Source of the DNA: Octopus sinensis
Taxonomy: Eukaryota
Reading direction: 5' to 3'
Assembly: GCF_006345805.1 (NCBI RefSeq)
Contig: NC_043024.1
Location: 4,588,001 to 4,652,000, forward strand
Length of the DNA: 64,000 nt
The notes under the pieces: generated by a model
What the model saw: the letters and a program-made list of their open reading frames with translations, nothing else
Databases searched by the model: none
What the model was told of the DNA's origin: nothing
In this document: one piece after another, positions 28,667 through 53,675 of the stretch
Layout: the number at the start of each line of letters is the position of its first letter
How positions within the stretch are numbered: position 1 is the first letter of the stretch
Translations under genes and position numbers: made by a program

Positions 28667-29899
<1,233 letters not shown>

Positions 29900-30278: not shown

Positions 30279-31709
30279 TTTCCTCCTTCCACTCCTCTTC
30301 CTTTATTTTTGCGAAGCGAGTGGTTGCTTTTATGTCTGTAGCCTTGCTAAATAGTTTAAATTTGGAAAATTTAAAGTATTTATATACCCTTTCGTTTTTT
30401 TCATCAAAAGCAATGATCTTATCATATTTTTTTAAAGACTTTTTCACATCTTGTTTTATGGGGAGGGGCTTGGCGAACTGTTTTCCAATGAATACAGTGC
30501 CATGGGGGTAGGGCTGGGGAATTTGCTTTGTGTGTATGTCTGTGGTGCTTGCTGATTTTTTCCTTGTTTGGGGAGGGGAGTCCAGGGTGTTGTCTTTTTT
30601 TCTTTTGTGTGTCACCTGTGTGTAATCCATTTGTTCGATACAATCCTCCGTTTCTGTTTCTTTGCTTGTCGTCGTCTTGTTATCTTTTTCCGCCTTCTCC
30701 TCTTCAGTGTTTGAAGCACTTTGAGGAGGGGCTTCGTTGGTTTTCTTTTTTTTTAAGCAGTTCGAGCGGACGTGACCCTTCTCGCCACATTTAAAACACC
30801 TAGGTCTGCGCCCCTCCACTGACACTCTCATGGACGTTCCATCCTCGTTGAATATCCTATCGGGCAGGTTCTCCAATATCTTGTTCTCTGCCTGAACGAG
30901 GAGTTCCAGCGTCTGTCCCTTCCAGCGTACCTCCTCTTTCCTTCTCATCTGCAGAATCGAAATTTCCCGCTCTACATTGTGCAGGACCGCCGCTGCTACC
31001 CACATTATTTCATACCCTCTCGGTATGTCCTCTACCAGCAGTTTAGCTGTTCTTTTTCCCATATACGAGGGTAGCAACATGATATCATCATTTTTCAGGG
31101 TCATTGATGACACCTCTCTTGCTACCTCAGCCGAGTCAAAATGTGCTTCAACAGTGGCGCTGCGAGCACCTCGTACGACATGGCGAATTTTGTCCCACAC
31201 CGGGGACAAGCACTTTTCGACTATCTCGTTTCTAACGTCCATAATTTTTTTTTCTTTGTAGCTATACACTTTGTATATAACTGTTTTTTCCTTTATTTCT
31301 TGTACCTTCGCTTGCGGCGGTACAAGTTTGATTTCGTTTCCTTCCATTTTCACCAAGTTCCTAAATTCGAACAGTTGTTCGATCTTGAATTCAACGTCCA
31401 TCATGGTTCCGCCTACCGCGGCCGAAAAAGACTGTTTTGTTACTTCAGTGTCCTTTAATTCACTTGTTCCCATCGCGGGAAAATCATTCTTCGACGCCAA
31501 GTCGAAATCCATTTCTCAAAAATGTTTCAAAAATTACCTCGAAGGTAATAACAATTTTAAACATAGAATTTTCTGCCCCGTAGGGCGAAAATTACCGTTA
31601 CACAACGGGCACCGTTCAATTAACAATTAACAACAAACAACGATGAGCAAAAAGTCGAACTCTCTCAACAAAAGGCAGCATATTTCTCAAAACGCAGATG
31701 AAAGTTCAA
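30279..31709 (-). mobile_element. Tx1/L1-clade LINE copy c: 5'UTR + ORF1 (30262-31512), 3'-truncated and fused to the ZNF-B upstream sequence
   Basis: Near-identical to ORF1 of the full copies; zinc knuckle CFKCGEKGHVRSNC; the last residues (SIFYF) come from ZNF leader DNA. Confidence 0.9.
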
Positions 31710-31721
31710 GGGAACTAACTC

Positions 31722-34700
31722 TTTATTTCTATATTATGATTATACAATCGTTACGTAGAAGGACAAATACAGGATATACATGCAAGAAACAGTTAAGAGG
31801 GTCGATTAAAAATTTTCCATAACATTTGGATTATTCATTATTAAAAATTCGTCTGTAAATTGTCCTTTACATGACCAATAGAATATTATAACATTACATA
31901 AACTTTCGATCTTACCGAAGTTTTAAACCCCGGCAATTTATAAGGCCCCGCAGCTTTTGTTTCCTCTCCTCCCTCCATAGTTAAGCTGGGTTTCTGACAC
32001 CCACCTTTTTTTCCACTTCCTTCCATCTTTTCTCATACACACCCCGTGGTAAGATCCTCTTTTCCAGCCCCATTTTGCTCTTCAGATGATATCTGAAGTA
32101 AGTGAGCAAGCCGGGGCCCGAGACAAAGGATCCTATCGCGACTCCTTCCATTCTTGTTCGCCACATGCATTCTTTTACTACTGCAACCGTGCAGTGAAAA
32201 CATGCCTCACCTTCCTTCGAGAGTCCAGTTGGCGGTATCATCTTAATCATAGACTCAGCCGACAGCTGTACTCGTCCCCGATGCGATAACACGTGTTCTG
32301 CGTAACTTATCAAGTCGGACAACTTCCGACAGTGTACAAAAGCGTGCTGGACGGTTTCATCGTCCAACTCGCACCTTGGACACATCGGTGGCACTGAAAT
32401 TCCGTGCCGCGATAACTTCTCGCGAACAGGTAAAGCATTCCTATAGCACTGCCAGGCCAGGGATCTTTGGAAATTATCCAAATACCCCGTCCTGAAGGTC
32501 TTTTTAAACATGTTGGTAAGCTGGTCTTCGTCAAACTCCAGAGCCCCTCCTAGGACGCCGTCGTTCTTTGCCTCTACCAGCCTTCTATAAAATACCGAGG
32601 TGGTATTTCCGCAGCCGGCCTTGCATGCCTTGTGGATCAGCGTGAGTGCCTGTCGGCACTCCTTTTGCCATAAAGTCAGTTTCCATCTTTTGATGCGACC
32701 GGGTTTAAAATTCACTAAGGAGGCCGGTCTCGGGAAAAATTCCCCTGCCAGCGGACTCCACACCTTATCATCCTCCAGGTGGTGCCAGAGATGCTTCAGC
32801 CTCAACGCATGTCTGCGCATCATCAACCAAGGCATTCCTAACCCACCCTTTAACGGTTCCTGGCAGCAAACGGAGCGCCTCACAAGTGGCTTTCCTCCCT
32901 TCCACAAAAAGCGGAAAAGGATTCGCTCCAACTTGCTAAGCCATGAACCGGGGCAAGGGACAACGGTCAGGCGGTAAGTGATTACAGATGCAATGAACAT
33001 CTGTACCACCTCCACCCTTCCTTTCAAGGACAGAAACCTTCAGGACCAGGTCCGTACTATGGCCTCCACCTTGCTCGTCACCTCACTCCAGTTCCTCTCC
33101 GTTTGGGAGTCTGGCCCAAACCAAACTCCTAGCAACTTAACAGGGCCATCCGTCCAGTGTCCCACGACACTGGACGATATCGACTTGCTCCTCCAGGTGC
33201 CGAGGCGCAAGCCAACCGACTTGTCCTTGTTAACCTTTGCTCCTGCCATCGCCTCGTATCCTCTGATAGCCTCTTCCACACAAGGTAGCTGGGCCTCATT
33301 GGACACGATGAGGGTGACGTCATCCGCATAAGCAGTAACCGTCCTCCCACCTCCGATCTCATCCGAGTTACTTCCCAGCCTCTCCAACTTTCGCAGCAAT
33401 GGCTCAAGAGCCAACACGTACAAAAGTGGTGACAAGGGGCACCCTTGACGAACTGAACATTCGATCGAAAACGGTTCCGTTAGGTAACCGTTTATCTGGA
33501 CGGTGGACTTGATGCCGCTATACATAGCGGAGATCCACCCGCGAAATTCAGGGCCCAGTCCAGCCGCTTCGAGGACCGTCGCCAGGTACTCATGGTCTAC
33601 CCTATCGAACGCTTTACTTTGGTCTAAATGGACCATTACCCCGCCCTTGTCGGTTAATTTACCCACCCTATCTAAGGTGTAGCGTATAAGGTGAAGATTG
33701 TCCTGGATCGACCTGCCTGGAATTGCACATGTCTGTGCTCTCCCTACAAGTTTCTCCACGACAACCGTCAACCTTTTTGCCAACACCTTGGCCAAAATCT
33801 TTAACTCTACATTAAGTAGAGTTATGGGCCTGTAGTTACTAATGTTATCCCCCTTGCTCGGGTCTTTCTGGATTAGCGTCACCACTCCCCGGCTTACAGA
33901 ACTGGGAATTCTCCCATTCTGCTGCCAGTTCGTGTAGACGCCTGCCATATTCCCCCGAACAAGTCCGGCATACTTTGGTAAAACTCGTAGGGCAGACCAT
34001 CCAACCCCGGCGACTTCTCCCCGGCGCATCCGGCCAGTATCCCCTCTATCTCCGCGGGAGTGATCGCTTCTTCACAGCACTCCACCTCACGCCCCGAGAG
34101 CCGCGGTCCGCCGGCCAGGAAGTCCTTTAAGGTCCTCCCCCGCTCCGGCGCCACACCACCCCCGAACACGCGGGCGAAATGCTGGTGAAGAAACTTTTGC
34201 ATCTCCTCCTGTCCATAGATCTTTTGTCCCTGTTCGTCAGTTAAAGACTTGATTGAGGCTTTGTTACCTCTCTGACTCTCCAGTCGACGGGCCCATCCGG
34301 CAACGTTAATACCTTCTCGTTTCCCAGCGCGTAGCTTAGCTCTGACTCTGCAACCTTCGTGTTTGGAGTTAAGGTGACGGTACAATACCGTCCTTGCCGC
34401 CATCACTCCGGATGCAGAGCCAGCTTCCATTGCCTCGTTTAGATTCTTAACTAAATCGTCCTCTATCCTAGACCTATCTAACCTTAGCTGATTGCTAAAT
34501 CTAATGGACTCTGAACGAATGGCTCTTTTGAGGGAGTGCCACCATCTATTGTTAATGATGGTGCCACACAATGCCCTCTGTACTAACACCTTAATCCGGG
34601 TACGGAAGTCTTCACAATTCAAAATAGCCTTGTTCAGCTTCCAGTACCGGGTCCCTGTCTATGACACTTGTCTAATTGCATCCTACACGTCACAAATTTG

Positions 34701-37014
34701 TGATCCGTGTAAGGCACAATGTGAAACTGTGGACAACTAAACGTATCCTTATCTCTTTTCTTAATAAATATCCTATCTAAATACGATCTGTGTGAGCCGT
34801 CGTTGTTACTCCACGTCCACTGTGGAACGCTCGGCTCATCCAGTCGGTAACGGTCCACTAGATCAAAGCTCTCTAGTAGACCCTTGAGGCTAGGGTTCCC
34901 CTTCCTATTGGTTGAGCCAACACTGTCGACCCGCGCTTCAAGGACAGTGTTAAAGTCCCCTACTAGGATTACCGTTTTCGACGTCGCTAAAAAGGGCTCC
35001 AGGTTCCGAAAAAAACCCGTCTGTCTACCCTCGTTCGGAGCGTAGACAGCTACCAACCTGAAGGACTGTTTACTTACGTGGGTCACATACAGAACAACCA
35101 GCCTGCCTTCTGGGTCCAGAAAGACAGTACTTACCTGCAAGTCCAAGCTCTTCCTGATAAGGACTGCCACGCCTCTGCCTCTTCCTCGGCTAGGAGAAAT
35201 AAATTTCTCGAACCCATTTAGAAGAGGCGAGAACGCTTGGGCCTCGTTCATCTTGGACTCGGTTGCAATAGCTATGTCTACTCCATGTGTCGTGAGGTCG
35301 TTCAGGAAACAAATTTGTTTCCACTTCGTCCCCATTCCACGTACATTCACACAACCCAGCTTAGCCATTGTCGGTGAGAGAAAAAATAAATGAACTTACG
35401 GTTGAGAAAGGGAGCATGACAGTTTAAATCTGCCCGCTTCCACTTCTTCCTCCCTTGTGGTCGTAGCTGCAGGGCTCTTAACCGGCGTTGCCACCGGGCT
35501 CTGGGTAGGTGTGGTTGCCGGGGTTATAACAAGTTTACCCTCCAGTACTTCTTTTGTTACATCTCTTATCAGTCTATTCTTTAGATGTTCTTGTAGTATT
35601 TCCTCCTTCCACTCGTCTTCCTTTATTTTTGCGAAGCGAGTGGTTGCTTTTATGTCTGTAGCCTTGCTAAATAGTTTAAATTTTGAAAATTTATAGTATT
35701 TATATACCCTTTCGTTTTTTTCATCAAAAGCAATGATCTTATCATTTTATTTTAAAGACTTTTTTACATCTTGTTTTATGGGGAGGGGCTTGGCGAACTG
35801 TTTTCCAATGAATACAGTGCCATGGGGGTAGGGCTGGGGAATTTGCTTTGTGTGTATGTCTGCGGTGCTTGCTGATTTTTTCCTTGTTTGGGGAGGGGAG
35901 TCCAGGGTGTTGTCTCTTTTTCTTTTGTGTGTCACCTGTGTGTAATCCATTTGTTCGATACAATCCTCCGTTTCTGTTTCTTTGCTTGTCGTCGTCTTGT
36001 TTTCTTTTTCCGCCTTCTCCCCTTCAGTGTTAGAAGCACTTTGAGGAGGGGCTTCGTTGGTTTTCTTTTTTTTTAAGCAGTTCGAGCGGACGTGACCCTT
36101 CTCGCCACATTTAAAACACCTAGGTCTGCGCCCCTCCACTGACACTCTCATGGACGTTCCATCTTCGTTAAATATCCTATCGGGCAGGTTCTCCAATATC
36201 TTGTTTTCTGCCTGAACGAGGAGTTCCAGCGTACCTCCTCTTTCCTTCTCATCTGCAGAATCGAAATTTCCCGCTCTACATTGTGCAGGACCGCCGCTGC
36301 TACCCACATTATATCATACCCTCTCGGTATGTCCTCTACCAGCAGTTTAGCTGTTCTTTTTCCCATATACGAGGGTAGCAGCATGATATCATCATTTTTC
36401 AGGGTCAATGATGACACCTCTCTTGCTACCTCAGCCGAGTCAAAATGTGCTTCAACAGTAGCGCTGCGAGCACCTCGAACGACATGGCGAATTTTGTCCC
36501 ACACCGGGGACAAGCACTTTTCGACCATTTCGTTTCTGACGTCCATAATTTTCTTTTCTTTGTAGCTATACACTTTGTATATAACTGTTTTTTCCTTTAT
36601 TTCTTGTACCTTCGCTTGCGGCGGTACAAGTTTGATTTCGTTTCCTTCCATTTTCACCAAGTTCCTAAATTCGAACAGTTGTTCGATCTTGAATTCAACG
36701 TCCATCATGGTTCCGCCTACCGCGGCCGAAAAAGACTGTTTTGTTACTTCAGTATCCTTTAATTCACTTGTTCCCATCGCGGGAAAATCATTCTTCGACG
36801 CCAAGTCGAAATCCATTTCTCAAAAATGTTTCAAAAATTACCTTCGAAGGTAATAACAATATTAAATACAGAATTTTCTGCCCCGTAGGGCGAAAATTAC
36901 CGTTACACAACGGGCACTGTTCAATTAACAATTAACACAAACAACGATGAGCAAAAAATCGAACTCTCTCGACAAAAGGCAGCAAATTTCTCAAAACGCA
37001 GATGAAAGTTCAAG
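31722..37014 (-). mobile_element. Full-length but inactivated Tx1/L1-clade LINE copy a (ORF1 35396-36816; ORF2 31981-35368)
   Basis: APE motifs (VNVRG, VYAPN, ILVGDFN, SYLDRIF, TDHK), RT motifs (NYRPITLLN, LDQSKAFDRV, RQGCPLSP, AYADD) and a C-terminal CPRC...H...C; several frameshifts and stops. Confidence 0.93.
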
Positions 37015-37066
37015 GGGAACTAACTCTTGTCTTGAAATATTAACGGCTTTCCTGATATATATTTGA

Positions 37067-37654
37067 GTAGCAGTATAACCCGGCGTTGCTCGGTATTAAA
37101 TTCGGATCATTAAGAGATGAAGTGAGTTATTTCAAACCAAAATAAGTGACAATGATATCACATTTGAGCGAAATCTGCTGAAATTGGCGAAAAGTTTGGC
37201 TGATCGCAGGGAATTTGATTGGGAAATACCATAAGGAATCAGTTTATCGATTATTTCTACTAATGGTTTTTTTTTTTTTTTTTTTAAGAACTTAAAGCAT
37301 TCAAAGATCCCATGAGTCCTAAGTAGTGCTGGTATCAAGTTTGAGCAAAATATGTCAAAATTGGTAAAAGTTATGGTTGAAAATGGGGTGTAGCCAATTT
37401 TAGCAGAAACCCTATAAGGAATTAGTTTATCAATTATTTATCCTCATTGAATGGATAACCCGAAATCGATGGTGTTTGGCCTTGGGATTTGTTGATGGAC
37501 ATGGTGAAGCATGGTCTCACCGGACATTGCAATCTGCAGAACTTGACCGGCATGTCTGACCGTGGGGGATAAAGCTGCATCGTTGAAATGAAAACATTTT
37601 CACCCCTCCTGCACCCTGTTACAATGGTGGCCTCAATCAAGTGGGGCGTCAGGG
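37067..37654 (-). mobile_element. Helitron 3' tail (helicase C-terminus + terminus), duplicate of 43471-44033
   Basis: IEATIVTG...FTMSINKSQGQT and the same terminal hairpin; reverse complement of the 43.5-44.0 kb segment. Confidence 0.85.
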
Positions 37655-37828
37655 AATATGTTTAAAAGGTAGATATTCCAAAATGCAAATTTATGCCATT
37701 TCAGTTTTAATGGATTGTAGAAGTAAACCTGCATTCAAACTAATAAACTTACCCAAAAGTTAATAAATTACGAGCAGATTCAATAATTATAATTGCAACT
37801 CCTGGACATTAAATCTGTGAGACACACG

Positions 37829-37883
<55 letters not shown>

Positions 37884-37971
37884 CAATATAGATGTTAATG
37901 GCCTAGATAACCAATGTTTTCACCTTGGAGTTCTATCTTGTCAACACAGCTTTGTTTAGTAACGCAGATGT

Positions 37972-38043
37972 GGAGGCACATGGCCTAATGGTTAGAGCAG
38001 CCGACTCGCGGTCGTGGGATCGCGGGTTCGAATCTCAGGCCGG
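37972..38043 (+). mobile_element. tRNA-derived SINE head (truncated)
   Basis: A-box-like TGGCCTAATGG and B-box-like GGTTCGAATCT at tRNA-like spacing; no proper acceptor stem, so not a true tRNA. Confidence 0.6.
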
Positions 38044-38872
38044 AATTCATGTGGTGGTAGGGGTTTAGGGTAAATAAACAAACAAGAAAACATCAAAACA
38101 AACCAAAAAAAAAAAAAAACATATATACATATACATACACACACACAAGATTCCATGCGCTGCCAGGACATCCTCCGTCTATAGCCAGAAAAAAGGCCTT
38201 TTCGTTTGTTTTCTTGTTTATTTTGATTTCTGTATTGTATTTTCTTTTTATTTCTCATTTTGTATTTTCCTGTACATGCATTTTTATCTTGTATTTTATT
38301 GTGCATTTTTATTGTTACTGTCCTGTTTTTGCTACATTTTTTTCGTGTTCGTTTTACCCCTCTGTAAGAAAATTTTATTTTAATTCTCACGCAGGAAGGC
38401 CTAGTTTTGACGAGTCGTGTCCTGTCTTGCCTTCGAAACACGCTTGAGTCTAACTAGCGACAGCTGATGATTGGGGATTTTTCCTTGTGTAGGATGTCCT
38501 GTACTTTGTTTTTCTGTTGTAAAAAAATGTTTTTCCCGTCTTCGTTTCTCGTCCAGTTCCACATCTCGGTTTTTCCATTGTAAAAAAATGGCTTTTCCGT
38601 TTTCGTTTCTTGTTGAGTTCTACGTCTTGTTGTGGTGTCTTGTACTCTCGTATATATATATTTTTATATATGCATGTATATATACATGTAGATGTAGGTA
38701 CTTACATATATGTTTGTATGTATGCATATATTTTATTTATTACACTATTGTCTGACAGCGCTTCGTGTCGGGTTCGTTTCGATTCGTCGCTTCGTTCTGT
38801 TTCTTCTTCTTCTCCCAGTTCTGTTTTATATATATACATATATATACATAAATATATATATATATATAATAT

Positions 38873-38903
<31 letters not shown>

Positions 38904-39159
38904 CCTGAATGATGTACCTACCATGGATGCTGTCCAAAAACTAAAAACTAGTAAAAGAATATATCACACACATTTTATTTGATTTGTGTAAAAAAATCAT
39001 ATCCATTGTTCTAAGAAATAATTTATTTATTTTCTTTAAACAATTCTTTTATTTTATTCTGTAAAATCAATTCATTTGCATACGCGCAAGTCGTTGTAGG
39101 ATCGACTACTTACGACTAGCTAGCGCCCTCCGGGTCCAGTCTTTGCTAGTAGTACCTAT

Positions 39160-39915
39160 ATATATAAGTTGTAAATTGTAATGACGGAGAAGAACTAGCA
39201 AAAATAAAGACATTTCTTTTAATGTTTCACACAAATGCCGTTCCATTTCTTCAGTGAACCATCCTCTTTTCGTTTCAGTATTTCGAGTGCACAATCTAAA
39301 TTTTATATATTCTCTATTTTTCAGAAATTACATCGGAACTTCCCTGCATTTAAATAAATTCTTAGATTTACAAGCCAAAAATAAAGGAAAATGTTGTGTA
39401 AACAAGGTATTGCACTGACTCAAAGCAATGTAAGAAATAACCAAAACTGGAACGGAATGTCTAAAAGAAAATAAAACAAAATTATTCGAATGTCAGCCTT
39501 ACTTTCATATAATTTCGGCTTTGTTTGGTGAGATTCTTTTAATTTAATTATTCAACACGTCAGAATAAGCAAATGTACGTAAAATGACACATATACAATA
39601 GAAATGCTTAAATAAATATAATACTCACATAGAAATATACGTATATATATAGAGAGAGTCACCGAGGAAAATGTGAGAATATGATGAAGCAGTGAGGTCT
39701 GGAGTCTGAGTGGACAATGACAGCTTCAAGAGAATATCTAGATTTTTAATAGCAAACGTTGATTTATATTTTACAGATGAATTTAATAAAGAATACTGTA
39801 CGGATTTCTTTACACAGTTAATTATCAAACATGTGTATATTCAATTGGGTTCTCTCTTAAACAAGGAAACAGAATTGGAAAGATTTAGCAATTAACAGAC
39901 GAGGGGAAATCACTC
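39160..39915 (-). promoter_or_regulatory. Paralogous ZNF upstream module (minus orientation), with no ZNF coding exon attached
   Basis: Reverse complement aligns with 51102-51400 and 51540-51880; begins GAGTGATTTCCCC...TGTTAATTGCTAAATCTTTCC. Confidence 0.65.
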
Positions 39916-40391
39916 TATTTCTAATATCCGTTTTTAATTAAGAGCTGAGGTGCTTCACATAAATTCGTAAAAGACTTTCTTGCTCCTGTTTCTTACGCAT
40001 TTTTATTGCTTGATCGGTTCCACTTGACAACTGATATTTAAGAGAAAACCCAATCAAATATATACACGATTGGTAATTAAATTTCTAAAGAAACAGATGC
40101 AGCATTTTTGATTATGTGGACCTGAAAAATATTAATTAACGTTTGTTGTAATGAGGAAGAAATTCTCTTGAAGCTCTCTTTGTCCACTCTGAGTTCAGTT
40201 TTCACTACAATATATTCTTCTCACACCTTCCTCGTTAACTCACTCTACATATATACATACATATATATATATATATTTATTGTGTAAGTATTTTATTTAT
40301 ATAAATATTTCTATTATATATGTGTCATGCCATATATCTGATTGTTTCGATGTGTTGACTAAGTTAAAAGGGTACTACTTAAGAAGGGTGC

Positions 40392-40557
40392 TCCCGGTGC
40401 GCGCACTCGCGTATCCGCCCTAGCTAGTCGATCCTTACTTTGTGTTTTTGTTTTATTTACTTTGTGTTTTTGTGTTTTATTTACTTTACTACGTAGTCGT
40501 TGTAGGATCGACTAGTCACGACTAGCTAGAGCGGATGCGTGAGTGCGCGCACCTGGA
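40392..40557. mobile_element. Short MITE with CpG-rich imperfect TIRs
   Basis: GGTGCGCGCACTCGCGTATCCGC...GCGGATGCGTGAGTGCGCGCACC. Confidence 0.7.
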
Positions 40558-40699
40558 CAACTCTAATTAAGTAATACCAGTTAAAAGAAAGAATTTCACT
40601 AAACAAATACGATCTATTGCATTTCAGTCTGTTTCAGGGTTAGGGGAAGGGTATCTTTTTTTTCTTCACAAATGTAAATAAACCCAATCTGTTTCTTAA

Positions 40700-41784
40700 C
40701 CCTTTCGTTACTATATTTCTGACCAAATTACACCCCTTATGTGTTTCAATTAATTTCTAACGTAATCATAAATTTAGTCTGGTTTCATTAAACAACTATA
40801 ACTTTTTTATTTATCGATATATTAATCTGATTTTTGGAAGATAATTTAATGAAATATTCTCAACCAATTCTATACTATAATTTTTGTCACAAAGTGACTC
40901 TATTTGCAGGTAGATACAGGTAAATTCAACAAAATATAAAATTATTAAAATTTTGTTCAAACATCGCTATAGAAAATATTAGCTAATATTCAATTGGGTA
41001 TAAACAAAATTTTACGATAGAATTTGTTATTCTGGGTAACTTTCTGATACCCATAATAATATTTATGGCAAAATAGTCTTAATTTCATTTAAGGTTGTGG
41101 GAAATAACAAACTATCCTTTCTTTCGTTTTGTTTACGTTTAGCGTAACGGTTCGTTTTCGCTGTAATGATTTCAAATAGGCTCATTCGAAAAAGTAAATA
41201 GAAATAGCCTAAGGCTTTTTTTACCCTTCTGGGAAAGTCTGTGGCTTGGTCCAGTTTCTGCAGAAAAATCACCGAAAGAAACAGTTTTTAAATTTTCACT
41301 CCATTCAGGTGCCAATTCGTTTTCTTTATCGCTATCGGAGATCTCAGATTCACTGTTTTCACTTTCGGAAAATGAAACATCAAATTCATTATCAAATACC
41401 ATGTGCTTTTTTTTTTTCAGTCATATAGTTAGATTTATGAAGGTCTTCAGTAGAAAATCCTTCGAATTCTGACTCGCTGCTTGATATAATGAAATTCGTA
41501 TCCATTTTTTGTCAGAATTACAAATTTTGAAAACACAATAGGAACAAATTTCGGAAAAAAATCTCCCAAAATTCACGGAATTAAAATTACACTTCGATTA
41601 TTGTACAAAACTGTAGTTGAACTGTTTACGAAGTATAATACGTGTTTTCACGAATGTACTGAAGAGATTTGCTCTGATATTCTCATTTAAATATGAATAG
41701 GTAAATTCGGGCGGCTTTGGGCGGTTTGGTTTCATAAACCAAAATTTTTTTCGGGCGGCTTTGGGCGGTTTGGTAACGAAAGGG
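40700..41784 (-). mobile_element. Internally deleted piggyBac element
   Basis: TTAA target duplication (40696-40699, 41785-41788), 12-bp TIR CCCTTTCGTTAC, subterminal direct repeats, and N-terminal transposase fragments (acidic stretch; FYLLF...TNRYA...PTTLNEIK). Confidence 0.9.
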
Positions 41785-42849
41785 TTAAACGAGGGACATA
41801 TTCATACGGCACAGAATGTTTTTTACCTCAATAGACGTCAATGATTGGTTGAAATTGCAGAAAAATACAACAACAAATATCTTACAAAGTATAGAATTTT
41901 CTCAATAAAGCCAAGAGAAAAAAATATTCTATAAACATATTCTACCAGTATACGAAGTTTAAAATTTTTTAGTTACCTAGAAATTATGTTAAAAACTGCC
42001 GTTCAAACCGAAAAGATCCAGGCTGTTATTTTAATACTTTCATTCTGTTTGTTTTCTTTTAGACATTTCATTGCACTTTTGGTTATTTCCTATTTCCTAA
42101 AAATGTTTTATTTTGACACATTCTACCAGTATATGAAGTTTGAAAGTGTTTAGTTAACTAGAAATTGTCTACCGTTCAAAAGGAAAAGATCCAAACACCG
42201 TACTGAGCAAAAGAATTTGTGCAGGAACGTTATAGTTGCCTTCAAGGTAGGTTGACTGCACCTACATCCTTCCAACCACTTTGTAAGGCTATCAATCATG
42301 ATCAAGTAGCTCAAGCATAGTCTATATGTACCCAGGACCACAAACTCATAGTCTCAGACCACAATTGGTATTTCTCTGGTGGTGCCTTGGCTGCTAATGC
42401 ACAATCTCTACATAATTTTTACCAAATTTTGAATGTCCCGGTCCATTGCTGGCCAATACACATGACTCCCCATCAAAGCTTACAGTCATGACATCCCCGG
42501 GGGTTCACAATGAAATTCATGTAATGTCCTTTTCTGTACTGCAGTTGGTTCTACCACTCTTTGTGTTCACATTAATACATTGTCACAGATTTTCCTGCTT
42601 CATTGGTGTGTCTAGGAGTTGTTATTATAATACATGTGTCCACTCTATGATAGAAACTTCTCAAAAATGATGAGATTGGATAAGTTTAATACTTCTACAA
42701 TTTAGCAAAATAGAAGTGTTATAAATTTGCACTTTTGAATATCTACCTTTTAAACATATTCTATGTCTTATATTATTTTTTCTATTCTTTCAGAAAAATC
42801 ACATGAAATTGGCTAAAAAGAAAGAAAAGACGATAAGGTTAGGAATGAG

Positions 42850-44033
42850 GTGGGAAGAGGAAGAAAAGACTCAGAAAGAAGTGTGCAAATCCTTCCTGTC
42901 ATTCCTAAAGGGAGCAGGGCTGATGAAGTGCACGCATGCCTTAAGTCATCCATGTTGTGGCCCCAGGCTAAGACCTTAAGCCTAAGCACAAACATGCATG
43001 CGCACTTGCTTGGTGATAGAATGTCTGCTGCATTTGCAGAAGAAATTTTGGCCCTTGGAGAAGACAAGGTCCCTAGGAATGATAGGGGCGACATATCAAT
43101 CTATGATCTGTGCAACTCCGTGAACAACCCTTCTGGTTTTTTGGAAACAGTGTTCCCCAATCTGGAAAGTAATTATGCAGACATCAATTGGCTCGGTGAA
43201 AGAACCATCCTGGCCCCACAAAACGTAGGTGTCAGTGCTATCAATGACCAGCTCATATGACGAATTCCGGGTGAGGAGTACATCTACAAATCAATTGACC
43301 TGACGTCTGACCCCCAAGGCATTGTCATTTACCCTAACGAGTTTCTCAACTCATTGGAGCCAGAAGTGCTTCCACCTCACATCGTTAGGCTAAGGGTTGG
43401 ATGCCCAATTAGGCTAATCAGAAACTTAATTCCACCTAAACAGTGCCACAGGACCCGCTTAGTAATCAAGTCCCTGACGCCCCACTTGATTGAGGCCACC
43501 ATTGTAACAGGGTGCAGGAGGGGTGAAAATGTTTTCATTTCAACGATGCAGCTTTATCCCCCACGGTCATACATGCCGGTGAAGTTCTGCAGATTGCAAT
43601 GTCCGGTGAGACCATGCTTCACCATCTCCATCAATAAATCCCAAGGCCAAACACCATCGATTTGGGGTTTTCAATTCAATGAGGATAAATAATTGATAAA
43701 CTATTTCCTTATAGGGTTTCTGCTAAAATTGGCTACACCCCATTTTCAACCATAACTTTTACCAATTTTGACATATTTTGCTCAAACTCGATGCCAGCAT
43801 TACTTAGGACTCATGGGATCTTTGAATGCTTTAGTTCTCCAAAAAAGCGATGAGAAGAAATAATCGATAAACTGATTCCTTATGGTATTTCCCAATCAAA
43901 TTCCCTGCGATCCCAATTTCAGCAGATTTCGCACGAATGTGATGTCCTTGTCACTTATTTTAGTTTGAAATAACTCACTTCATCTCTTAATGATCCGAAT
44001 TTAATACCGAGCAACGCCGGGTTATACTGCTAC
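42850..44033 (+). mobile_element. Helitron remnant: PIF1-type helicase C-terminal part and 3' terminus
   Basis: ILPVIPKGSRADEVHACLKSS, LPPHIVRLRVGCPIRLIRNL and ISINKSQGQT; hairpin CCGAGCAACGCCGG followed by CTAC (CTAG variant). Confidence 0.88.
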
Positions 44034-44085
44034 TCAAATATATATCAGTAAAGCCGTTAAAATTTCAAGACAAGAGTTAGTTCCC

Positions 44086-47000
44086 CTTGTTGACTTTCAT
44101 CTGCGTTTTGAGAAATATGCTGCCTTTTGTTGAGAGAGTTCGATTTTTTGCTCATCGTTGTTTGTGTTAATTGTTAATTGAACAGTGCCCGTTGTGTAAC
44201 GGTAATTTTCGCCCTACGGGGCAGAAAATTCTGTTTAAAATTGTTATTACCTTCGAGGTAATTTTTGAAACATTTTTGAGAAATGGATTTCGACTTGGCG
44301 TCGAAGAATGATTTTCCCGCGATGGGAACAAGTGAATTAAAGGACACTGAAGTAAAAAAACAGTCTTTTTCGGCCGCGGTAGGCGGAACCATGATGGACG
44401 TTGAATTCAAGATCGAACAACTATTCGAATTCCGGAACTTTGTAAAAATGGAAGGAAACGAAATCAAACTTGTACCGCCGCAAGCGAAGGTACAAGAAAT
44501 AAAGGAAAAGACAGTTATATACAAAGTGTATAGCTACAAAGAAAAAAAAAATTATGGACGTTAGAAACGAGATAGTCGAAAAGTGCTTGTCCCCGGTGTG
44601 GGACAAAATTCGCCATGTCGTTCGAGGTGCTCGCAGCGCTACTGTTGAAGCACATTTTGACTCGGCTGAGGTAGCAAGAGAGGTGTCATCAATGACCCTG
44701 AAAAATGATGATATCATGTTGCTACCCTCGTATATGGGAAAAAGAACAGCTAAACTGCTGGTAGAGGACATACCGAGAGGGTATGATATAATGTGGGTAG
44801 CAGCGGCGGTCCTGCACAATGTAGAGCGGGAAGTTTCGATTCTGCAGATGAGAAGGAAAGAGGAGGTACGCTGGAAGGGACAGACGCTGGAACTCCTCGT
44901 TCAGGCAGAAAACAAGATATTGGAGAACCTGCCCGATAGGATATTTAATGAGGATGGAACGTCCATGAGATTGTCAGTGGAGGGGCGCAGACCTAGGTGC
45001 TTTAAATGTGGCGAGAAGGGTCACGTCCGCTCGAACTGCTTAAAAAAAAAGAAAACCAACGAAGCCCCTCCTCAAAGTGCTTCAAACACTGAAGGGGAGA
45101 AGGCGGAAAAAGAAAACAAGACGACGACAAGCAAAGAAACAGAAACGGAGGATTGTATCGAACAAATGGATTACACACAGGTGACACACAAAAGAAAAAA
45201 AGATAACACCCTGGACTCCCCTCCCCAAACAAGGAAAAAATCAGCAATCACCGCAGACATACATACAAAGCAAATTCCCCAGCCCTACCCCCACGGCACT
45301 GTATTCATTGGAAAACAGTTCGCCAAGTCCCTCCCCATAAAACAAGATGTGAAAAAGTCTTTAAAAAAAAATGATAAGATCATTGCATTTGATGAAAAAA
45401 ACGAGAGGGTATATAAATACTTTAAATTTTCAAAATTTAAACTATTTAGCAAGGCTACAGACATAAAAGCAACCACTCGCTTCGCAAAAATAAAGGAAGA
45501 CGAGTGGAAGGAGGAAATACTACAAGAACATCTAAAGAATAGACTGATAAGACACGTAACAAAAGAAGTACTGGAGGGTAAACTTGTTATAACCCCGGCA
45601 ACCACACCTACCCAGAGCCCGGTGGCAACGATGGTTAAGAGCCCTGCAGCTACGACCACAAGGGAGGAAGAAGGGGAAGCGGGCAGATTTAAACTGTCAT
45701 GCTCCCTTTCTCAACCGTAAGTTCATTTATTTTTTCTCTCACCGACAATGGCTAAGCTGGGTTGTGTGAATGTACGTGGAATGGGGACGAAATGGAAACA
45801 AATTTGTTTCCTGAACGACCTCACGACACATGGAGTAGACATAGCTATTGCAACCGAGTCCAAGATGAACGAGGCCCAAGCGTTCTCGCCTCTTCTAAAT
45901 GGGTTCGAGAAATTTATTTCTCCTAGCCGAGGAAGAGGCAGAGGCGTGGCAGTCCTTATCAGGAAGAGCTTGGACTTGCAGGTAAGTACTGTCTTTCTGG
46001 ACCCAGAAGGCAGGCTGGTTGTTCTGGATGTGACCCACGTAAGTAAACAGTCCTTCAGGTTGGTAGCTGTCTACGCTAACGAACGAGGGTAGACAGACGG
46101 GTTTTTTTCGGAACCTGGAGCCCTTTTTAGCGACGTCGAAAACGGTAATCCTAGTAGGGGACTTTAACACTGTCCTTGAAGCGCGGGTCGACAGTGTTGG
46201 CTCAACCAATAGGAAGGGGAACCCTAGCCTCAAGGGTCTACTAGAGAGCTTTGATCTAGTGGACCGTTACCGACTGGATGAGCCGAGCGTTCCACAGTGG
46301 ACGTGGAGTAACAACGACGGCTCACACAGATCGTATTTAGATAGGATATTTATTAAGAAAAGAGATAAGGATACGTTTAGTTGTCCACAGTTTCACATTG
46401 TGCCTTACACGGATCACAAATTTGTGACGTGTAGGATGCAATTAGACAAGTGTCATAGACAGGGACCCGGGTACTGGAAGCTGAACAAGGCTATTTTGAA
46501 TTGTGAAGACTTCCGTACCCGGATTAAGGTGTTAGTACAGAGGGCATTGTGTGGCACCATCATTAACAATAGATGGTGGCACTCCCTCAAAAGAGCCATT
46601 CGTTCAGAGTCCATTAGATTTAGCAATCAGCTAAGGTTAGATAGGTCTAGGATAGAGGACGATTTAATTAAGAATCTAAACGAGGCAATGGAAGCTGGCT
46701 CTGCATCCGGAGTGATGGCGGCAAGGACGGTATTGTACCGTCACCTTAACTCCAAACACGAAGGTTGCAGAGTCAGAGCTAAGCTACGCGCTGGGAAACG
46801 AGAAGGTATTAACGTTGCCGGATGGGTCCGTCGAGTAGAGAGTCAGAGAGGTAACAAAGCCTCAATCAAGTCTTTAACTGACGAACAGGGACAAAAGATC
46901 TATGGACAGGAGGAGATGCAAAAGTTTCTTCACCAGCATTTCACCCGCGTGTTCGGGGGTGGTGTGGAGCCGGAGCGGGGGAGGACCATAAAGGACTTCC

Positions 47001-49395
47001 TGGCCGGCGGGCCGCGGCTCTCGGGGCGTGAGGTGGAGTGCTGTGAAGAAGCGATCACTCCCGCGGAGATAGAGGGGATACTGGCCGGATGCGCCGGGGA
47101 GAAGTCGCCGGGGTTGGATGGTCTGCCCTACGAGTTTTACCAAAGTATGCCGGACTTGTTCGGGGGAATATTGGCAGGCGTCTACACGAACTGGCAGCAG
47201 AATGGGAGAATTCCCAGTTCTGTAAGCCGGGGAGTGGTGACGCTAATCCAGAAAGACCCGAGCAAGGGGGATAACATTAGTAACTACAGGCCCATAACTC
47301 TACTTAATGTAGAGTTAAAGATTTTGGCCAAGGTGTTGGCAAAAAGGTTGACGGTTGTCGTGGAGAAACTTGTAGGGAGAGCACAGACATGTGCAATTCC
47401 AGGCAGGTCGATCCAGGACAATCTTCACCTTATACGCTACACCTTAGATAGGGTGGGTAAATTAACCGACAAGGGCGGGGTAATGGTCCATTTAGACCAA
47501 AGTAAAGCGTTCGATAGGGTAGACCATGAGTACCTGGCGACGGTCCTCGAAGCGGCTGGACTGGGCCCTGAATTTCGCGGGTGGATCTCCGCTATGTATA
47601 GCGGCATCAAGTCCACCGTCCAGATAAACGGTTACCTAACGGAACCGTTTTCGATCGAATGTTCAGTTCGTCAAGGGTGCCCCTTGTCACCACTTTTGTA
47701 CGTGTTGGCTCTTGAGCCATTGCTGCGAAAGTTGGAGAGGCTGGGAAGTAACTCGGATGAGATCGGAGGTGGGAGGACGGTTACTGCTTATGCGGATGAC
47801 GTCACCCTCATCGTGTCCAATGAGGCCCAGCTACCTTGTGTGGAAGAGGCTATCAGAAGAGACGAGGCGGTGGCAGGAGCAAAGGTTAACAAGGACAAGT
47901 CGGTTGGCTTGCGCCTCGGCACCTGGAGGAGCAAGTCGATATCGTCCAGTGTCGTGGGACACTGGACGGATGGCCCTGTTAAGTTGCTAGGAGTTTGGTT
48001 TGGGCCAGACTCCCAAACGGAGAGGAACTGGAGTGAGGTGACGAGCAAGGTGGAGGCCATAGTACGGACCTGGTCCTGAAGGTTTCTGTCCTTGAAAGGA
48101 AGGGCGGAGCTGTTACAGATGTTCATTGCATCTGTAATCACTTAAGGCCTGACCGTTGTCCCTTGCCCCGATTCATGGCTTAGCAAGTTGGAGCGAATCC
48201 TTTTCCGCTTTTTTTGAAGGGAGGAAAGCCACTTGTGAGGCGCTCCGTTTGCTGCCAGGAACTGTTAAAGGGTGGGTTAGGAATGCCTTGGTTGATGATG
48301 CGCAGACATGCGTTGAGGCTGAAGCATCTCTGGCACCAACTGGAGGGTGATAAGGTGTGGAGTCCGCTGGCAGGGGAATTTTTCCCGAGACCGGCCTCCT
48401 TAGTGAATTTTAAACCCGGTTTCATCAAAAGATGGAAACTGACTTTATGGCAAAAGGAGTGCCGACAGGCACTCACGCTGATCCACAAGACGGGCAAGGC
48501 CGGCTGCGGAAATACCACCTCGGTATTTTATAGAAGGCTGGTAGAGGCAAAGAACGACGACGTCCTAGGAGGGGCTCTGGGGTTTGACGAAGACCAGCTT
48601 ACCAACCTGTTTAAAAAGACTTTCAGGACGGGGTATTTGGATAATTTCCAAAGATCCCTGGCCTGGCAGTGCTATAGGAATGCTTTACCTGTTCGCGAGA
48701 AGTTATCGCGGCACGGAATTTCAGTGCCACCGACGTGTCCAAGGTGCGAGTTGGACGATGAAACCGTCCAGCACGCTTTTGTACACTGTCGGAAGTTGTC
48801 AGACTTGATAAGTTACGCAGAACACGTGTTATCGCATCTGGGACGAGTACAGCTGTCGGCTGAGTCTATGATTAAGATGATACCGCCAACTGGACTCTCG
48901 AAGGAAGGTGAGGCATGTTTTTACTGCACGGTTGCAGTAGTAAAAGAATGCATGTGGCGTACAAGAATGGAAGGAGTCGCGATAGGATCCTTTGTCTCGG
49001 GCCCCGGCTTGCTCACTTACTTCAGATATCATCTGAAGAGCAAAATGGGGCTGGAAAAGAGGATCTTACCACGGGGTGTGTATGAGAAAAGATGGAAGGA
49101 AGTGGAAAAAAAGGTGGGTGTCAGAAACCCAGCTTAACTATGGAGGGAGGAGAGGAAACAAAAGCTGCGGGGCCTTATAAATTGCCGGGGTTTAAAACTT
49201 CGGTAAGATCGAAAGTTTATGTAATGTTATAATATTCTATTGGTCATGTAAAGGACAATTTACAGACGAATTTTTATAATGAATAATCCAAATGTTATGG
49301 AAAATTTTTAATCGAACCTCTTAACTGTTTTTTTCATGTATGTCTTGTATTTGTCCTTCTATGTAACGATCGTATAATCATAATAAAGAAATATG
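44086..49395 (+). mobile_element. Full-length but inactivated Tx1/L1-clade LINE copy b (ORF1 44283-45720; ORF2 45748-49137)
   Basis: Same domains as copy a; frameshifts at ~44550, ~46080 and ~48210; stops at 48077 and ~48145. Confidence 0.93.
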
Positions 49396-49407
49396 GAGTT
49401 AGTTCCC

Positions 49408-51101
49408 TAACGTTTGACGTCGGTTGTGTTTTTCTCAGCTCGTAGAATTCGGTGAAAAAGAACAAAAAGTGTTGTTGTTGTGGAGTTTTGAACTTCGGTT
49501 GATGCGGTTTCGCGTCGCACTGGTTTTGCGCGTTGCACTGTTTCTGTTTGGGCGGCCGTTTTCGGTCTGAGGAGATTATGAGCCGCCTCTCCCTAACTGG
49601 TGAGATGGCCGGGAGGAATTTATTTGAAAGTTTGCCGGAATTGTCAACATCTGAGGAGGAGTTGGAAGAAGCAGTGGCAAAAATGGACAGGAAGCTGGAA
49701 AGTACCTACGCAGGAATAATGAGGAAGTCGATAGAAAAAGAGGTGGACCTGGCTGAACTACCAGGCTTCCAGAATTTTATGAAGGAGGAGGAGAACGGCG
49801 AAGTCGAGCTGTCACCTCCAGCAAAGCGGGGCGAGTGGTTCAACCGTAGAACCATAAAATATAGAGTGTACGAGAATGGAGGAAGAAAGATGGAAATAGT
49901 CAATATGGAAGTTATTGAAGAGGCATTGAAACAGACTGGAGAGGAAATTGTTTACCTGACTAGAGGAATGGAGTATGGAACGGTTGCGGTGCAGTATAGA
50001 AGTGAGAACGTCGCCAAAAAAATAGCAGCCAAGGTGGTGAAGACCGAGAAAATATACTTACTGCCCTCGTATCTAAATAGAAGGACCACAAGAATTAGGG
50101 TGGAGGGAATACCTCCACACCTAGAGGGTGAATACATAACGGCAGCGGTGATTAAGGGAAACGAGGAAAAGGTGGACATCCTCCACGCCACGATGAAATA
50201 CGAAGGCGTGAGAGGTGCTACCTTGGACATGAATATGCAGACGGAGGCGGAAGCAGTGGAAGGGCTGACAGATACTGTAGGAACGGGGAACATTATTATG
50301 AGAGTGTGGGTGGAGGGCAGGGCGCCCAGGTGCTATAAGTGTGGCCTGAGGGGTCACATAAGAGCCTACTGCCCTCCCCCACCAAAGGAAAAGGAAATCG
50401 TTACGGAACCCCAAAAGAAGGAAGACACTAAAGAAAAGGAGAACCAAACAGAAAGGGAAGCAACTGAAGGGGAGGAGATCCAGCAAGAGTGGGAAGAAGG
50501 GAGAAAAAAAAGGAAAAGAAAGAAAAAAGAAAACAGTACGAAACCCTAACCCACCCCAACACCACACGTACCCTCTGAATCCCATCCCTCCCCTGCAAAC
50601 AGCGATTCCACCCACTCCCCGCCTACAAGAAAAACAAAAACAAATGCAGACACACAGAACGAACAAAGTCCCAGGACCTATTTTTTGTATGTTGCGAGGA
50701 GGAGGGACACCCAGAACTCGAAAAGGATGGTACATAAAGACTTATGGCGCGAACATGAAGATGGTAGTTACGCGGTTGTGAAATATGAATTTATGGAGAC
50801 ATTGGCGAGGAGGTGTGAGGAAGAGGGTATAAAATGGATGACAGTGCCGATGCAGGGTGAAATGATAGAGATGTATGAAAGGAAAACGAAGAGTGTGATA
50901 GAAAAACTAGGAATTGTAATTGGAAATGGGTGATAAAGGACAGGTAAGTGATGCTGGCGGATGGGGCCGAGAGCGTCGCTTTCATATTATCATTTTTTCA
51001 TTTAATAATTCATTGTTCATAAATTTAATGTTAATGTTCTATGTCCCCAATGTTTTGTAATGTCCCCTCTTCGCCGCCCCTGGTGGGTAATAAAAAAATC
51101 G
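49408..51101 (+). mobile_element. ORF1-only (HAL1-like) non-autonomous retroelement related to the adjacent Tx1 ORF1
   Basis: ORF 49578-50933 with one in-frame TAA at 50547-50549; LLPSYLNRRT / VEGRAPRCYKCGLRGHIRAYC homologous to the Tx1 ORF1; no ORF2; ends AATAAAAAAA; flanked on both sides by GAGTTAGTTCCC. Confidence 0.8.
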
Positions 51102-53675
51102 GAGTTAGTTCCCGTTGTTAATTGTAAAAACTCTTCCTCATTAAGTGTATTTCTTGTTCTTGTTCCTCACGCACCTTGATTGTTTGATCAGTTCCACTTG
51201 ACAACTGATATTTAAGAGAAAATCCAATCAAATATATACAAATGATTGGTAATTAACTGTCTAAAGAAACAGATACAGCATTTACGATTATGTGGACCTG
51301 AAAAATATTAATTAACGTTTGTTGTAGAAATCTAGAAATTCTCTTGAAGCTGTCGTTGTCCACTCTGACTCCAGTTCTCACATCTTCCTCCTTCACTCTT
51401 TCTCTCCATATCTATTACTATGTAAGTATTTATTTAAACATTTCTATTATATATGTGTCGTATTATGTACATTTATTTGTTTCGATGTGTTGAGAAAGTT
51501 AAAAGGAAAAAAAATCTCACGAAGACGAAATTATACGAAAGGCTGTAATTTTAATACTTTCATTGTGTTGTCGTTTTCTTTTAGACATTTCATTGCACTT
51601 TTGGTTATTTTCTAAATTATTTGTAAAAACGTCGGATCAATCCCTTGTTTAGATAACATTTATCTTTCTTTCTAACGTGTAAATTCGACGATTTCGTTAA
51701 AAGCGGGAAAATTACGATGGAATTAGTAAGAAATGGGGAATGTATAAAAATACGAGTGTGCACTTGAAATACTAAAACGAAAAGCAAATATCGTATCGAG
51801 AGGAAATGGCTTTTATTTGAGACATAGGAAGTCTTTATTTCTGGCGGTTCTTCTGCATCATTACAACTTACAATTAATATCTGGGGTTTGTTTTGTTTTT
51901 TCCGGAATTTTCAGAAAATTTTTGCAAATACATATTCTACACACGAGAATTCAACAAAAAAGCAAAAACTGTGTGCTTTAAGAGCTATTTGGCTGTTATT
52001 TTTCGCACATCTCACGACCACCTGATACCTCCCTAGTTTCTTTGTCACTCTGATGTGCTGACGTTTTTCAGTATTTTTCTCCATATAAAACCGGCGAGCT
52101 GGTAGAATCGTTAGCACGTGAGTTCAAATTCCGCCGAGGTCGACTTTGCCTTTCATCCTTTCGAGGTCGATAAATTTAGTACCAGTTGCGTACTGGGGTC
52201 TATCTAATCCACTGGGCCTCCCTCTCCCAAAATTTCTGGCCTTGTGCCTAGAGTAGAAAAGATATCCTTCTCCACATAAACACATTGTTGGGATTTAAGC
52301 AAAGTTCTACAGTGGCAATTTTTTAAAAAATGGGAAACAATTTTTTTCATAATGTAGGTCACAAATTTGGAGAATTTTCCGAAAATTCCACAGAAAAATG
52401 GGGAAAAAATATATAATGTTTAAAGCAGAATTGCACCCTTTTTTAAATGTTATTTTCAATTAATTATGCAAGTTATCCTTTTCTTTCTTCGTAATGCGTA
52501 TATATTTAATATGAATGTATTTTTCACTCATCCAGATAAACAATATTTCGTTTTGAAGCAACAAGGAAGAGAAACATTAATTATAATGTGTAAGAATTTA
52601 TAATTAAAAGAAAAAACAAGAATGGTTAAATTTTAAAACTATGTGCATAACAATGAAAAGAAATTATAGTTTTCCGTAAAAGAAGGATAGACTTCATTGA
52701 AGCCTCTTCCATTTGCCCCATGGAGAAGGATTGTCACCAATTTCATCAACCAACAATTTTTCTTAACATCAAAAATTCCCCACAAAAGATTTTGATGCTG
52801 CAAGTCAGACATCAATATTATTTACTGACTTTTATGCATCTTTTATGCTCAACAAAATGTTAACATTAAGCTAACCACATATATATATTTGTATATTTAT
52901 GCATATACAGAAAGAGGCAGAGGAGGAGTGATATCTATGTTATAAAACAAACCTGTGTTGATACAAAAGAACACTGAGGTGAAAACATCAGATATCTACT
53001 GTCATTGACATGTATATTGGTGTGTGTGTGTGTCTAGGACAGACGCAATGTCCAGGAGGTGTTATTACGATGGATGTGTCTGTGATATAAACCTCTTGAA
53101 AATAGAGAGATGGGATGAATATAATAGTTCAGATAAAGGATCAATTCTACAATTTATGAAAACAGAAATGTCGTAAATTTGCACTTTTGAATATCTGCCT
53201 TTTAAACATGCTTTATGTCTTATATTATTTTTTCTATTCTTTCAGAAAAATCACATGAAATTGGCTAAAAAGTATTTTTTACTTTTAAAGAATCATCAAT
53301 ATGTATCATGTTTGAAAGACTCTGCAAAGATATTCTACAAACGTATAATCCTGCTTCTATAAAACATTGCTGAATTACAGTAAAATATTTCTTCAGAGAG
53401 AGAAAGCATTTCTTTACTTCTGTGTCTGAAATGTGCAAAAGATAATCTTCTCTTTTAAATATACTTTGGTAGATTTCCAAAGAGTATTTGCAACATTTTT
53501 AAATATTAGCATTGATCACGTTCAGAAGAAATATAAGAGAAGTGATATTTGTTTGGAATAAACTATAAAAGCAAAAAGAAGCAAAATATCCATATATTTT
53601 GGTGAGAGAAGAAATATTTTTGAAAAGTTGTTGATCTGTACAACTTGAAGGTTCAGTTTTATTTTTCTTGAAGAG
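51102..53675 (+). promoter_or_regulatory. ZNF-C upstream module (putative promoter, intron and 5' leader); splice acceptor AG at 53244-53245
   Basis: Conserved among paralogs (39160-39915, 39950-42820, ~61952-63900); polypyrimidine TTTTTTCTATTCTTTCAG acceptor conserved at 42792 and 62383. Confidence 0.6.
52093..52263 (+). mobile_element. tRNA-derived SINE
   Basis: GGCGAGCTGGTAGAATCGTTAGC A-box region, GTTCAAATTCC B-box and TTTCATCCTTTCGAGGTCGATAAA body; relatives at 56548-56763 and ~7187-7225. Confidence 0.75.

Follow-up and report, generated by a model that had tools for sequence, protein, structure and literature searches.

Target-specific LINEs (long interspersed nuclear elements) of the Tx1 clade encode an apurinic/apyrimidinic endonuclease (APE) and a reverse transcriptase (RT), carry a C-terminal zinc-binding motif, and insert repeatedly into a single site of a multicopy sequence with a constant orientation, building head-to-tail stacks (PMC4494074, PMC4640811). 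Their described targets are the Tx1D transposon (Tx1L), the U2 small nuclear RNA (snRNA) genes (Keno), microsatellites (Kibi, Koshi) and a Mariner family (Tx1-Mar) (PMC4494074). Related lineages with a changed target, and a non-autonomous partner with a common 3' tail, complete the picture (PMC4494074, PMC4640811). Target choice is accepted to be set mainly by the endonuclease, according to a statement in PMC4494074 that cites Takahashi and Fujiwara 2002. We analysed a 64,000-nucleotide window of the Octopus sinensis genome (assembly GCF_006345805.1, contig NC_043024.1, positions 4,588,001 to 4,652,000 of the forward strand; window coordinates below count from its first letter). It holds a young LINE of about 5.3 kb and a 1.7-kb companion, here called element 2, in front of genes with C2H2 zinc fingers (ZNF genes). 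Both elements very probably insert site-specifically, in the sense orientation, immediately 5' of the 12-mer GAGTTAGTTCCC at the start of ZNF exon 1. All the traits of the Tx1 clade just listed have a counterpart here. However, the known targets of the clade are small RNA genes, other transposons and microsatellites, whereas the octopus elements are found at the first-exon start of protein-coding genes transcribed by RNA polymerase II (Pol II).

The elements of spliced-leader exons (SLACS, CZAR and CRE of trypanosomatids, NeSL-1 of nematodes) are the nearest functional analogues: they lie in the sense orientation, a few bases into a multicopy Pol II 5' exon. They use the promoter of the host gene, and their RNA opens with host bases. 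They differ from the octopus LINE, which is of the APE type with a protein-coding target, in their restriction-like endonuclease, their early branching (PMC4640811) and their target, a small non-coding RNA gene.

R2 and R1 of the 28S ribosomal DNA (rDNA) also show single-site specificity; they are described as having no promoter of their own and as being co-transcribed with their target, and in R2 the host sequence on the RNA helps precise joining (statements in PMC4494074, citing Eickbush 2000 and 2010, Fujimoto 2004). Their target, in contrast to ours, is rDNA transcribed by Pol I, and R2 has a restriction-like endonuclease and a self-cleaving ribozyme. Rfam scans of the window region and of the ZNF target returned no self-cleaving ribozyme family of the R2 kind. 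Ty3, a long terminal repeat (LTR) element, integrates within a base or two of the Pol III transcription start, and HeT-A forms head-to-tail arrays in which each copy is driven by its upstream neighbour. Ty3 and HeT-A/TART differ in using an integrase or the telomere end-addition machinery, and neither targets a protein-coding gene family. We found no description of LINE insertion at ZNF gene starts in cephalopods in the literature on octopus ZNFs and transposons, and no target of this type in the literature on site-specific LINEs.

The 12-mer and ZNF exon 1

The window contains five perfect copies of GAGTTAGTTCCC where 0.02 are expected, and none of 100 shuffles reached five. Self-comparison and direct reading show that the region is a large inverted duplication. 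On the plus strand, the right arm reads: flank, 12-mer, LINE, 12-mer, element 2, 12-mer, ZNF upstream module, C2H2 open reading frame (ORF). The left arm, on the minus strand, reads: flank, 12-mer, LINE, 12-mer, partial LINE, ZNF exon 2. A first-pass annotation of this DNA had placed the 12-mer at every intact element boundary, and both approaches agree with it; its five coordinates and strands were all exact by pattern count, and the last copy does run on as GTTGTTAATTGTAAAAACTCTTCC into the ZNF module, as it had stated.

The genome search was made in one 2.7-Gb assembly and scored the top 40 out of at least 242-302 candidates. Exact matches to the terminal 21-mer of the LINE number 38 genome-wide, and GAGTTAG follows 24 of them within 1-4 nt. 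Of 37 LINE 3' ends that were sampled, 21 adjoin the 12-mer; three others sit within the module, at a variant motif or beside a small deletion of the target, and the remaining 13 are at other places. At the other end of the element, a promoter-type flank and the 12-mer stand directly before 22 of 37 sampled 5' ends. Element 2 occupies the same base in 9 of 40 modules, and all on-target copies are sense relative to the exon. Such use of one position and one orientation within a repeated target is the pattern of site-specific non-LTR retrotransposons.

For the module that begins at position 51102, the top 40 matches in the genome were examined. Eighteen are empty, 11 are preceded by a LINE 3' end, 9 by an element 2 3' end and 2 by other sequence. 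The empty modules are uninterrupted: a flank with TATTAAAG or a TATAAAG box is followed by a single 12-mer and then by the module. A pattern search added 11 empty sites with another promoter and exon-1 variant. Since the empty modules hold one 12-mer, the motif is a property of the target. Genome-wide, the exact 12-mer is found 257 times against 152 for a reversed control, an excess of about 100 that is matched by the clusters. On the same strand, a C2H2 ORF of 3-19 fingers lies 2.3-5 kb downstream in 14 of 20 modules; on the opposite strand there is none. The annotation had proposed that insertion is site-directed, that the motif belongs to the ZNF module and that the modules stand near ZNF genes, and each of these proposals held: the flanks of other genomic copies are shared and not random, and the 12-mer is present both at empty sites and in ZNF modules.

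Upstream of the 12-mer there is a TATA-like box, whose first base lies at a distance of 33 nt in variant B and 35 nt in variant A. An empty locus (L123), in which the 12-mer begins at position 501, was used for mapping the contigs of four probable RNA runs. In three runs, from three studies, position 807 is joined to position 2485 with GT..AG ends, and contig depth is about 0 across 401-500 and climbs from 501. The module is thus a 5' non-coding exon of about 310 nt, spliced to the exon that runs into the C2H2 array. Because of the splice joint in RNA, the rise in depth and the TATA-like box at -33/-35, the 12-mer is identified as the first 12 nt of this exon, at or near the transcription start. 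By homology to L123, exon 1 in the window spans 51102-51421 and exon 2 starts at 53246. The idea that a ZNF promoter is targeted was therefore right as to the ZNF genes, but the motif lies outside the promoter proper, at the start of the spliced 5' exon. Rfam gave nothing relevant for the window region or for either of the two targets described in this work, only sub-threshold miRNA-like matches in simple sequence; being a spliced ZNF 5' exon, the module is not a small RNA gene of the snRNA, tRNA, 5S or spliced-leader type. The probable RNA runs contain 0.14-0.39 of the words of the promoter plus LINE 5' end, a measure by which the transcribed half is not distinguishable.

Two further features were seen at such modules. 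Upstream of the empty ZNF promoter, L123:1-300 (contig 2, 195328000) shows RNA-contig depths of 1e5-6e6 and numerous internal joints, and is probably a very abundant expressed repeat resembling a short interspersed nuclear element (SINE). At L084 and L143 (contig 28, 5510645), a third type of insert precedes the ZNF module and cuts within the 12-mer (...CTTCCATCA then GCTCCC).

The elements and the layout of the window

The LINE has an ORF1 with a CCHC motif, an ORF2 in the order APE, RVT_1, zf-RVT, and an AATAAA near its 3' end, with no A-run. Pfam matches are Exo_endo_phos (3.9e-14), RVT_1 (2e-33 and 8.5e-34) and zf-RVT (1.7e-10). ORF2 is interrupted in both full copies of the window. The best relative among solved structures is human L1 ORF2p (4e-44), R2 proteins following at about 1e-25. 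The encoded domains indicate an APE-type non-LTR retrotransposon with its own reverse transcriptase and endonuclease; these domains and the match to human L1 ORF2p show affinity to the L1 group and no further. With the APE N-terminal to the RT and a zinc-binding motif C-terminal, its domain arrangement is that of the Tx1 clade, and the first-pass label 'Tx1' is a candidate assignment. It is not an element with a restriction-like (PD-(D/E)xK) endonuclease: the endonuclease is APE-type and N-terminal, and the C-terminal piece matches zf-RVT alone. The nearest named relatives in the protein search come from two cephalopods, Argonauta hians and Acanthosepion pharaonis, and among protein-search names, cluster members and the ESM Atlas there were only unnamed or generic 'reverse transcriptase' relatives.

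The LINE 3' end in the window (49372-49395) contains a TATAAT 18-23 nt upstream of the next 12-mer; speculatively, it may give weak initiation for the downstream unit of a stack. Older LINE copies (92-95% identical) on several chromosomes have shared flanks with GGCATTATACATACATGCC, on the 3' side in L030, L035 and L036 and on the 5' side in L052 and L055. These flanks may be yet another repeated target, or part of a composite repeat.

The ORF product of element 2 matches LINE ORF1 with 37% identity over 195 amino acids (BLASTP, E 2e-32), and no Pfam family matched this ORF. The 3' ends of the two elements are alike, with a TAATAAAGAAAT-like tail that includes AATAAA and with an A-run in neither. 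In the four stacks that contain both, which are not all independent, the LINE is always promoter-proximal to element 2. The possibility that they form one composite transcript was considered and is not supported, the LINE being 96.8% and element 2 98.2% identical (one pair of loci). Elsewhere (L136:1-9330; contig 2, 57.15 Mb), 1.68-kb relatives of element 2, at 78% identity, stand head to tail in an array, with a constant spacer of 16-17 nt, AAGAAACGTCACCACTT, that may be another site-specific target.

The features of the two arms are as follows.

27193-30281, minus: remnant of the left-arm ZNF gene, exon 2 from about its 24th base on, with a C2H2 ORF at 28667-29872; 92.5% identical, inverted, to 53269-56355
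30279-31709, minus: partial LINE, the 5' 1.43 kb only, second in a head-to-tail stack; matches the 5' parts of the two full copies at 96.5-97.5% identity
31710-31721, minus: 12-mer joining the 3' end of the left full LINE to the 5' end of the partial LINE (at 31721); pattern count, read directly
31722-37014, minus: left full-length LINE, ORF2 in pieces (Pfam); 97.9% identical to the right copy
34634-35368, 33040-34029 and 31981-33027, minus: ORF pieces of the left LINE with the APE domain, the RT and the zf-RVT, respectively
37015-37026, minus: 12-mer at the 5' end of the left LINE (at 37026); pattern count, read directly
37027-37655, minus: left-arm promoter-type flank, variant A, including a run of TATATAT some 35 nt upstream of the motif; 92.05% identical to 43471-44073
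39904-39915, minus: degenerate 12-mer (2 mismatches) opening a diverged, uninserted exon-1-like module
43471-44073, plus: right-arm promoter-type flank, variant A; TATATAT starts at 44039, 35 nt upstream of the 12-mer
44074-44085, plus: 12-mer at the 5' end of the right LINE; pattern count, read directly
44086-49395, plus: right full-length LINE (Pfam, tblastn of the APE domain, direct reading)
44086-44095, plus: leader of the right LINE, CTTGTTGACT, resembling nt 13-22 of exon 1
44554-45720, plus: ORF1 of the right LINE, with a CCHC knuckle
45748-46471, 46259-48079 and 48214-49137, plus: APE (interrupted), RT and zf-RVT of the right LINE, respectively
49382-49387, plus: AATAAA of the right LINE, which has no poly(A) tail
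49396-49407, plus: 12-mer joining the 3' end of the right LINE to the 5' end of element 2
49408-51101, plus: element 2, an ORF1-only retroelement, with its ORF at 49533-50549 and AATAAA at 51089-51094
51102-51113, plus: native opening 12-mer of ZNF exon 1 and the target itself; it adjoins the 3' end of element 2
51102-51421, plus: ZNF exon 1, 5' non-coding, with a GTAAGT donor at 51422; 95% homology to L123:501-807
53246-54881, plus: exon 2, with a ...TTTCAG acceptor just before 53246, running into the C2H2 ZNF ORF at 53676-54881 (401 amino acids, at least 11 fingers)

Exon 1 and the intron of the left-arm ZNF remnant are deleted. We considered whether the junction between LINE and ZNF sequence there (30279-30281) might be a retro-copied splice junction and rejected this: since the LINE meets exon 2 within the exon, 24 nt from its start and with AAA microhomology, the junction marks a deletion and not a splice site. 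The first-pass annotation had taken the sequence from 39915 downward as an uninserted paralogous module. Such a module exists, but it is degenerate and part of a rearranged head-to-head pair, and far better empty target sites are present elsewhere in the genome. The pair (39700-40210), located centrally in the inverted duplication, comprises two degenerate exon-1-like modules with about 70 bp between them; one opens with GAGTGATTTCCC, and its plus-strand partner (from about 39975) is 5'-truncated, without the first 50 nt or so.

Junctions, target choice and independence of the insertions

On target, the LINE 3' end always adjoins the G of GAGTTAG. Where the first motif is mutated to GACTTAG (L069/L032), the 3' junction is found at the second GAGTTA, 19 nt further in, so it is the core motif that is recognised. 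Off-target LINE copies retain GAG, GAGTT or GAGTAG past the LINE end, which fits RNAs running a few bases into the downstream 12-mer beyond the AATAAA. At the 5' junction, most copies carry (C)TTGAACT and then TTCATCTGCG after the 12-mer, regardless of the local exon-1 variant, and the leader variants CTTGTTAACT or CTTGTTGACT correspond to nt 13-22 of the exon-1 variant seen empty in the pattern search. The bases after the 12-mer suggest a host-derived leader, present on an RNA whose 5' end is the ZNF start site; an element with such an RNA would be expressed from the captured promoter.

A scheme for insertion can be proposed from these junctions. The first-strand nick would be made at the -1/+1 boundary, and the short read-through tail of the RNA (GAG, GAGTT) would pair with the nicked target and prime reverse transcription. 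The 5' junction could then arise in two ways: a staggered second nick at least 12 bp downstream would create a true target-site duplication, or the target would pair with the host-derived leader of an RNA begun at the ZNF start site. The inserted copy would then be transcribed from the captured ZNF promoter. Each insertion would be flanked by the 12-mer, and repeated insertion at one site would give rise to head-to-tail stacks. We regard promoter capture with an RNA-borne leader as an evenly balanced proposition.

A sister LINE subfamily bears on how the target is chosen. It is 94.8-95.0% identical over 5.3 kb and is flanked on both sides, tandem LINE-LINE junctions included, by CCTTATTATTGCTTTC. 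This 16-mer is unrelated to the ZNF 12-mer and belongs to a tandem repeat unit of about 720 bp, in which a TATAAAA box precedes it by 30 nt. For this unit, 47 uninserted copies were found and no Rfam family matched. The APE domains of the two subfamilies are about 98% identical, with only about 3-4 shared positions out of 241 at which they differ. A nearly unchanged endonuclease and two unrelated targets below TATA boxes leave room for RNA-assisted or promoter-linked targeting. Sister loci include L133:1-7010 (contig 11, 24.61 Mb) and L134:1-7037 (contig 8, 36.0 Mb), and also L057, L061, L064, L070 and L127-L132.

Target choice could nevertheless be set by protein, with the APE or another DNA-binding part of ORF2 recognising GAGTTA(G) and staggered nicks generating the 12-mer pair as a target-site duplication of 12-16 bp. 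This would agree with the established, endonuclease-led view quoted above, with the insertion at the second GAGTTA where the first is mutated and with the clean 16-bp repeat at both ends of the sister subfamily. It is compatible, too, with the pairs in which the 5' and 3' 12-mers differ, later mutation of a plain duplication explaining them as well as an RNA-borne leader does. It accounts less readily for the sister subfamily, which sits on the unrelated CCTTATTATTGCTTTC despite so few differences in the APE and 95% identity of the element. It is also at odds with the (C)TTGAACT that follows the 5' 12-mer, which mismatches the local target and resembles nt 13-22 of the other exon-1 variant, suggesting that host sequence was carried on the RNA. 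Protein-set targeting is a serious contender, whose chances we would put slightly short of even.

More tentatively, target choice may be carried largely by the RNA, whose host-derived ends would guide priming and 5' joining at paralogous sites. The RNA of a copy at the start site, transcribed from the captured promoter, would open with the first bases of the host exon and stop shortly after entering the next copy of these bases, and near-identical proteins would home to unrelated start sites, ZNF exon 1 on the one hand and the 720-bp TATA-bearing repeat on the other. We offer this as a possibility rather than an expectation.

Position, and not sequence, might also direct insertion, if the ribonucleoprotein homed to the pre-initiation complex, or to DNA lying open at Pol II promoters of the TATA type, and made its nick at +1, like Ty3 at Pol III starts. 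Both unrelated targets do lie 30-35 nt downstream of a TATA-type box, and the LINE is promoter-proximal in all of the stacks with element 2, although these four are not all independent. However, the insertion at the internal GAGTTA, 19 nt into the exon, points to sequence rather than position. Moreover, off-target copies lack a promoter context, and a third type of flank (GGCATTATACATAC...) has no box at the right distance. We therefore consider purely positional targeting improbable.

The insertions could in principle go back to a single event. Eighteen on-target LINE copies run into a module, and their flanks form at least 11 clusters. When different clusters are compared, identity is 98.7% over the final 280 bp of the LINE and 89.9% over the adjoining 270 bp of flank, and all of the 141 between-cluster pairs show higher similarity in the LINE than in the flank. 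Within the window, identity is 97.9% between the LINE bodies, 92.05% between the upstream flanks and 92.5% between the ZNF arms, so that both full copies postdate the host duplication. Junction-adjacent bases vary from locus to locus. A history of one ancient insertion, multiplied as segmental duplication multiplied the ZNF genes, or passed between paralogous modules through gene conversion or unequal crossing-over, with no site-directed retrotransposition, would suit a duplication-rich cluster in which the window is itself an inverted duplication. It would also suit the copies at about 195.3 Mb of contig 2, which are tandem duplicates with identical flanks (one cluster of four), and the loci that have a 5' flank and leader in common and different 3' flanks, as LINE-LINE recombination would produce. 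Yet it runs against the between-cluster comparison, the emptiness of half of the sampled modules, the differing composition of the stacks and the presence of two unrelated elements at the same base, as well as the off-target read-through remnants and three small on-target deletions that are typical of target-primed reverse transcription. Because flanks diverge from the first base outside the 12-mer, conversion tracts would in addition all have had to end exactly there, and such a history is very unlikely.

Site-specific insertion at the ZNF start site, with capture of its promoter, has points against it as well. Thirteen of the 37 young LINE 3' ends are off target, and the specificity claimed by the first-pass annotation, though strong, is not absolute. 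Some combinations of 5' and 3' flanks look recombined between LINE copies (L045/L050, L069/L072). The start site is placed within tens of bases only, the contigs carrying no RNA-end information. No off-target copy has the leader, all 16 exact leader-LINE junctions being in ZNF clusters, and the 5' and 3' 12-mers differ in 4 of 19 pairs. Finally, all evidence comes from one assembly and from the comparison of paralogous sites, and with sampling of the best 40 the figures describe the youngest subfamily.

Possible consequences for the ZNF family, and further repeats

The expansion of octopus C2H2 ZNFs is reported to have coincided with a transposon burst, in a statement of PMC12988792 that cites Albertin 2015, and these proteins are suspected to bind transposons (PMC10547256, PMC12513265). 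About half of the sampled gene copies of the subfamily have an insertion between promoter and exon 1, and ZNF genes could therefore be silenced or rewired by the element, or their duplication helped. If the affected genes repress transposons, the element would also disable or hijack its own police. Insertion at the ZNF starts is relevant to the co-expansion of ZNFs and transposons in octopus. As a 'safe harbour', a protein-coding family occupied where its transcription starts would form a new class, one that includes a Pol II promoter. Two subfamilies with near-identical endonucleases and unrelated targets form a natural system for the study of LINE target choice, which bears on targeted gene insertion.

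Outside the two arms, the window contains two further tandem repeats, one with a period of 472-474 bp and three units (9961-11125) and one with a period of 483 bp and two exact units (16061-16843).

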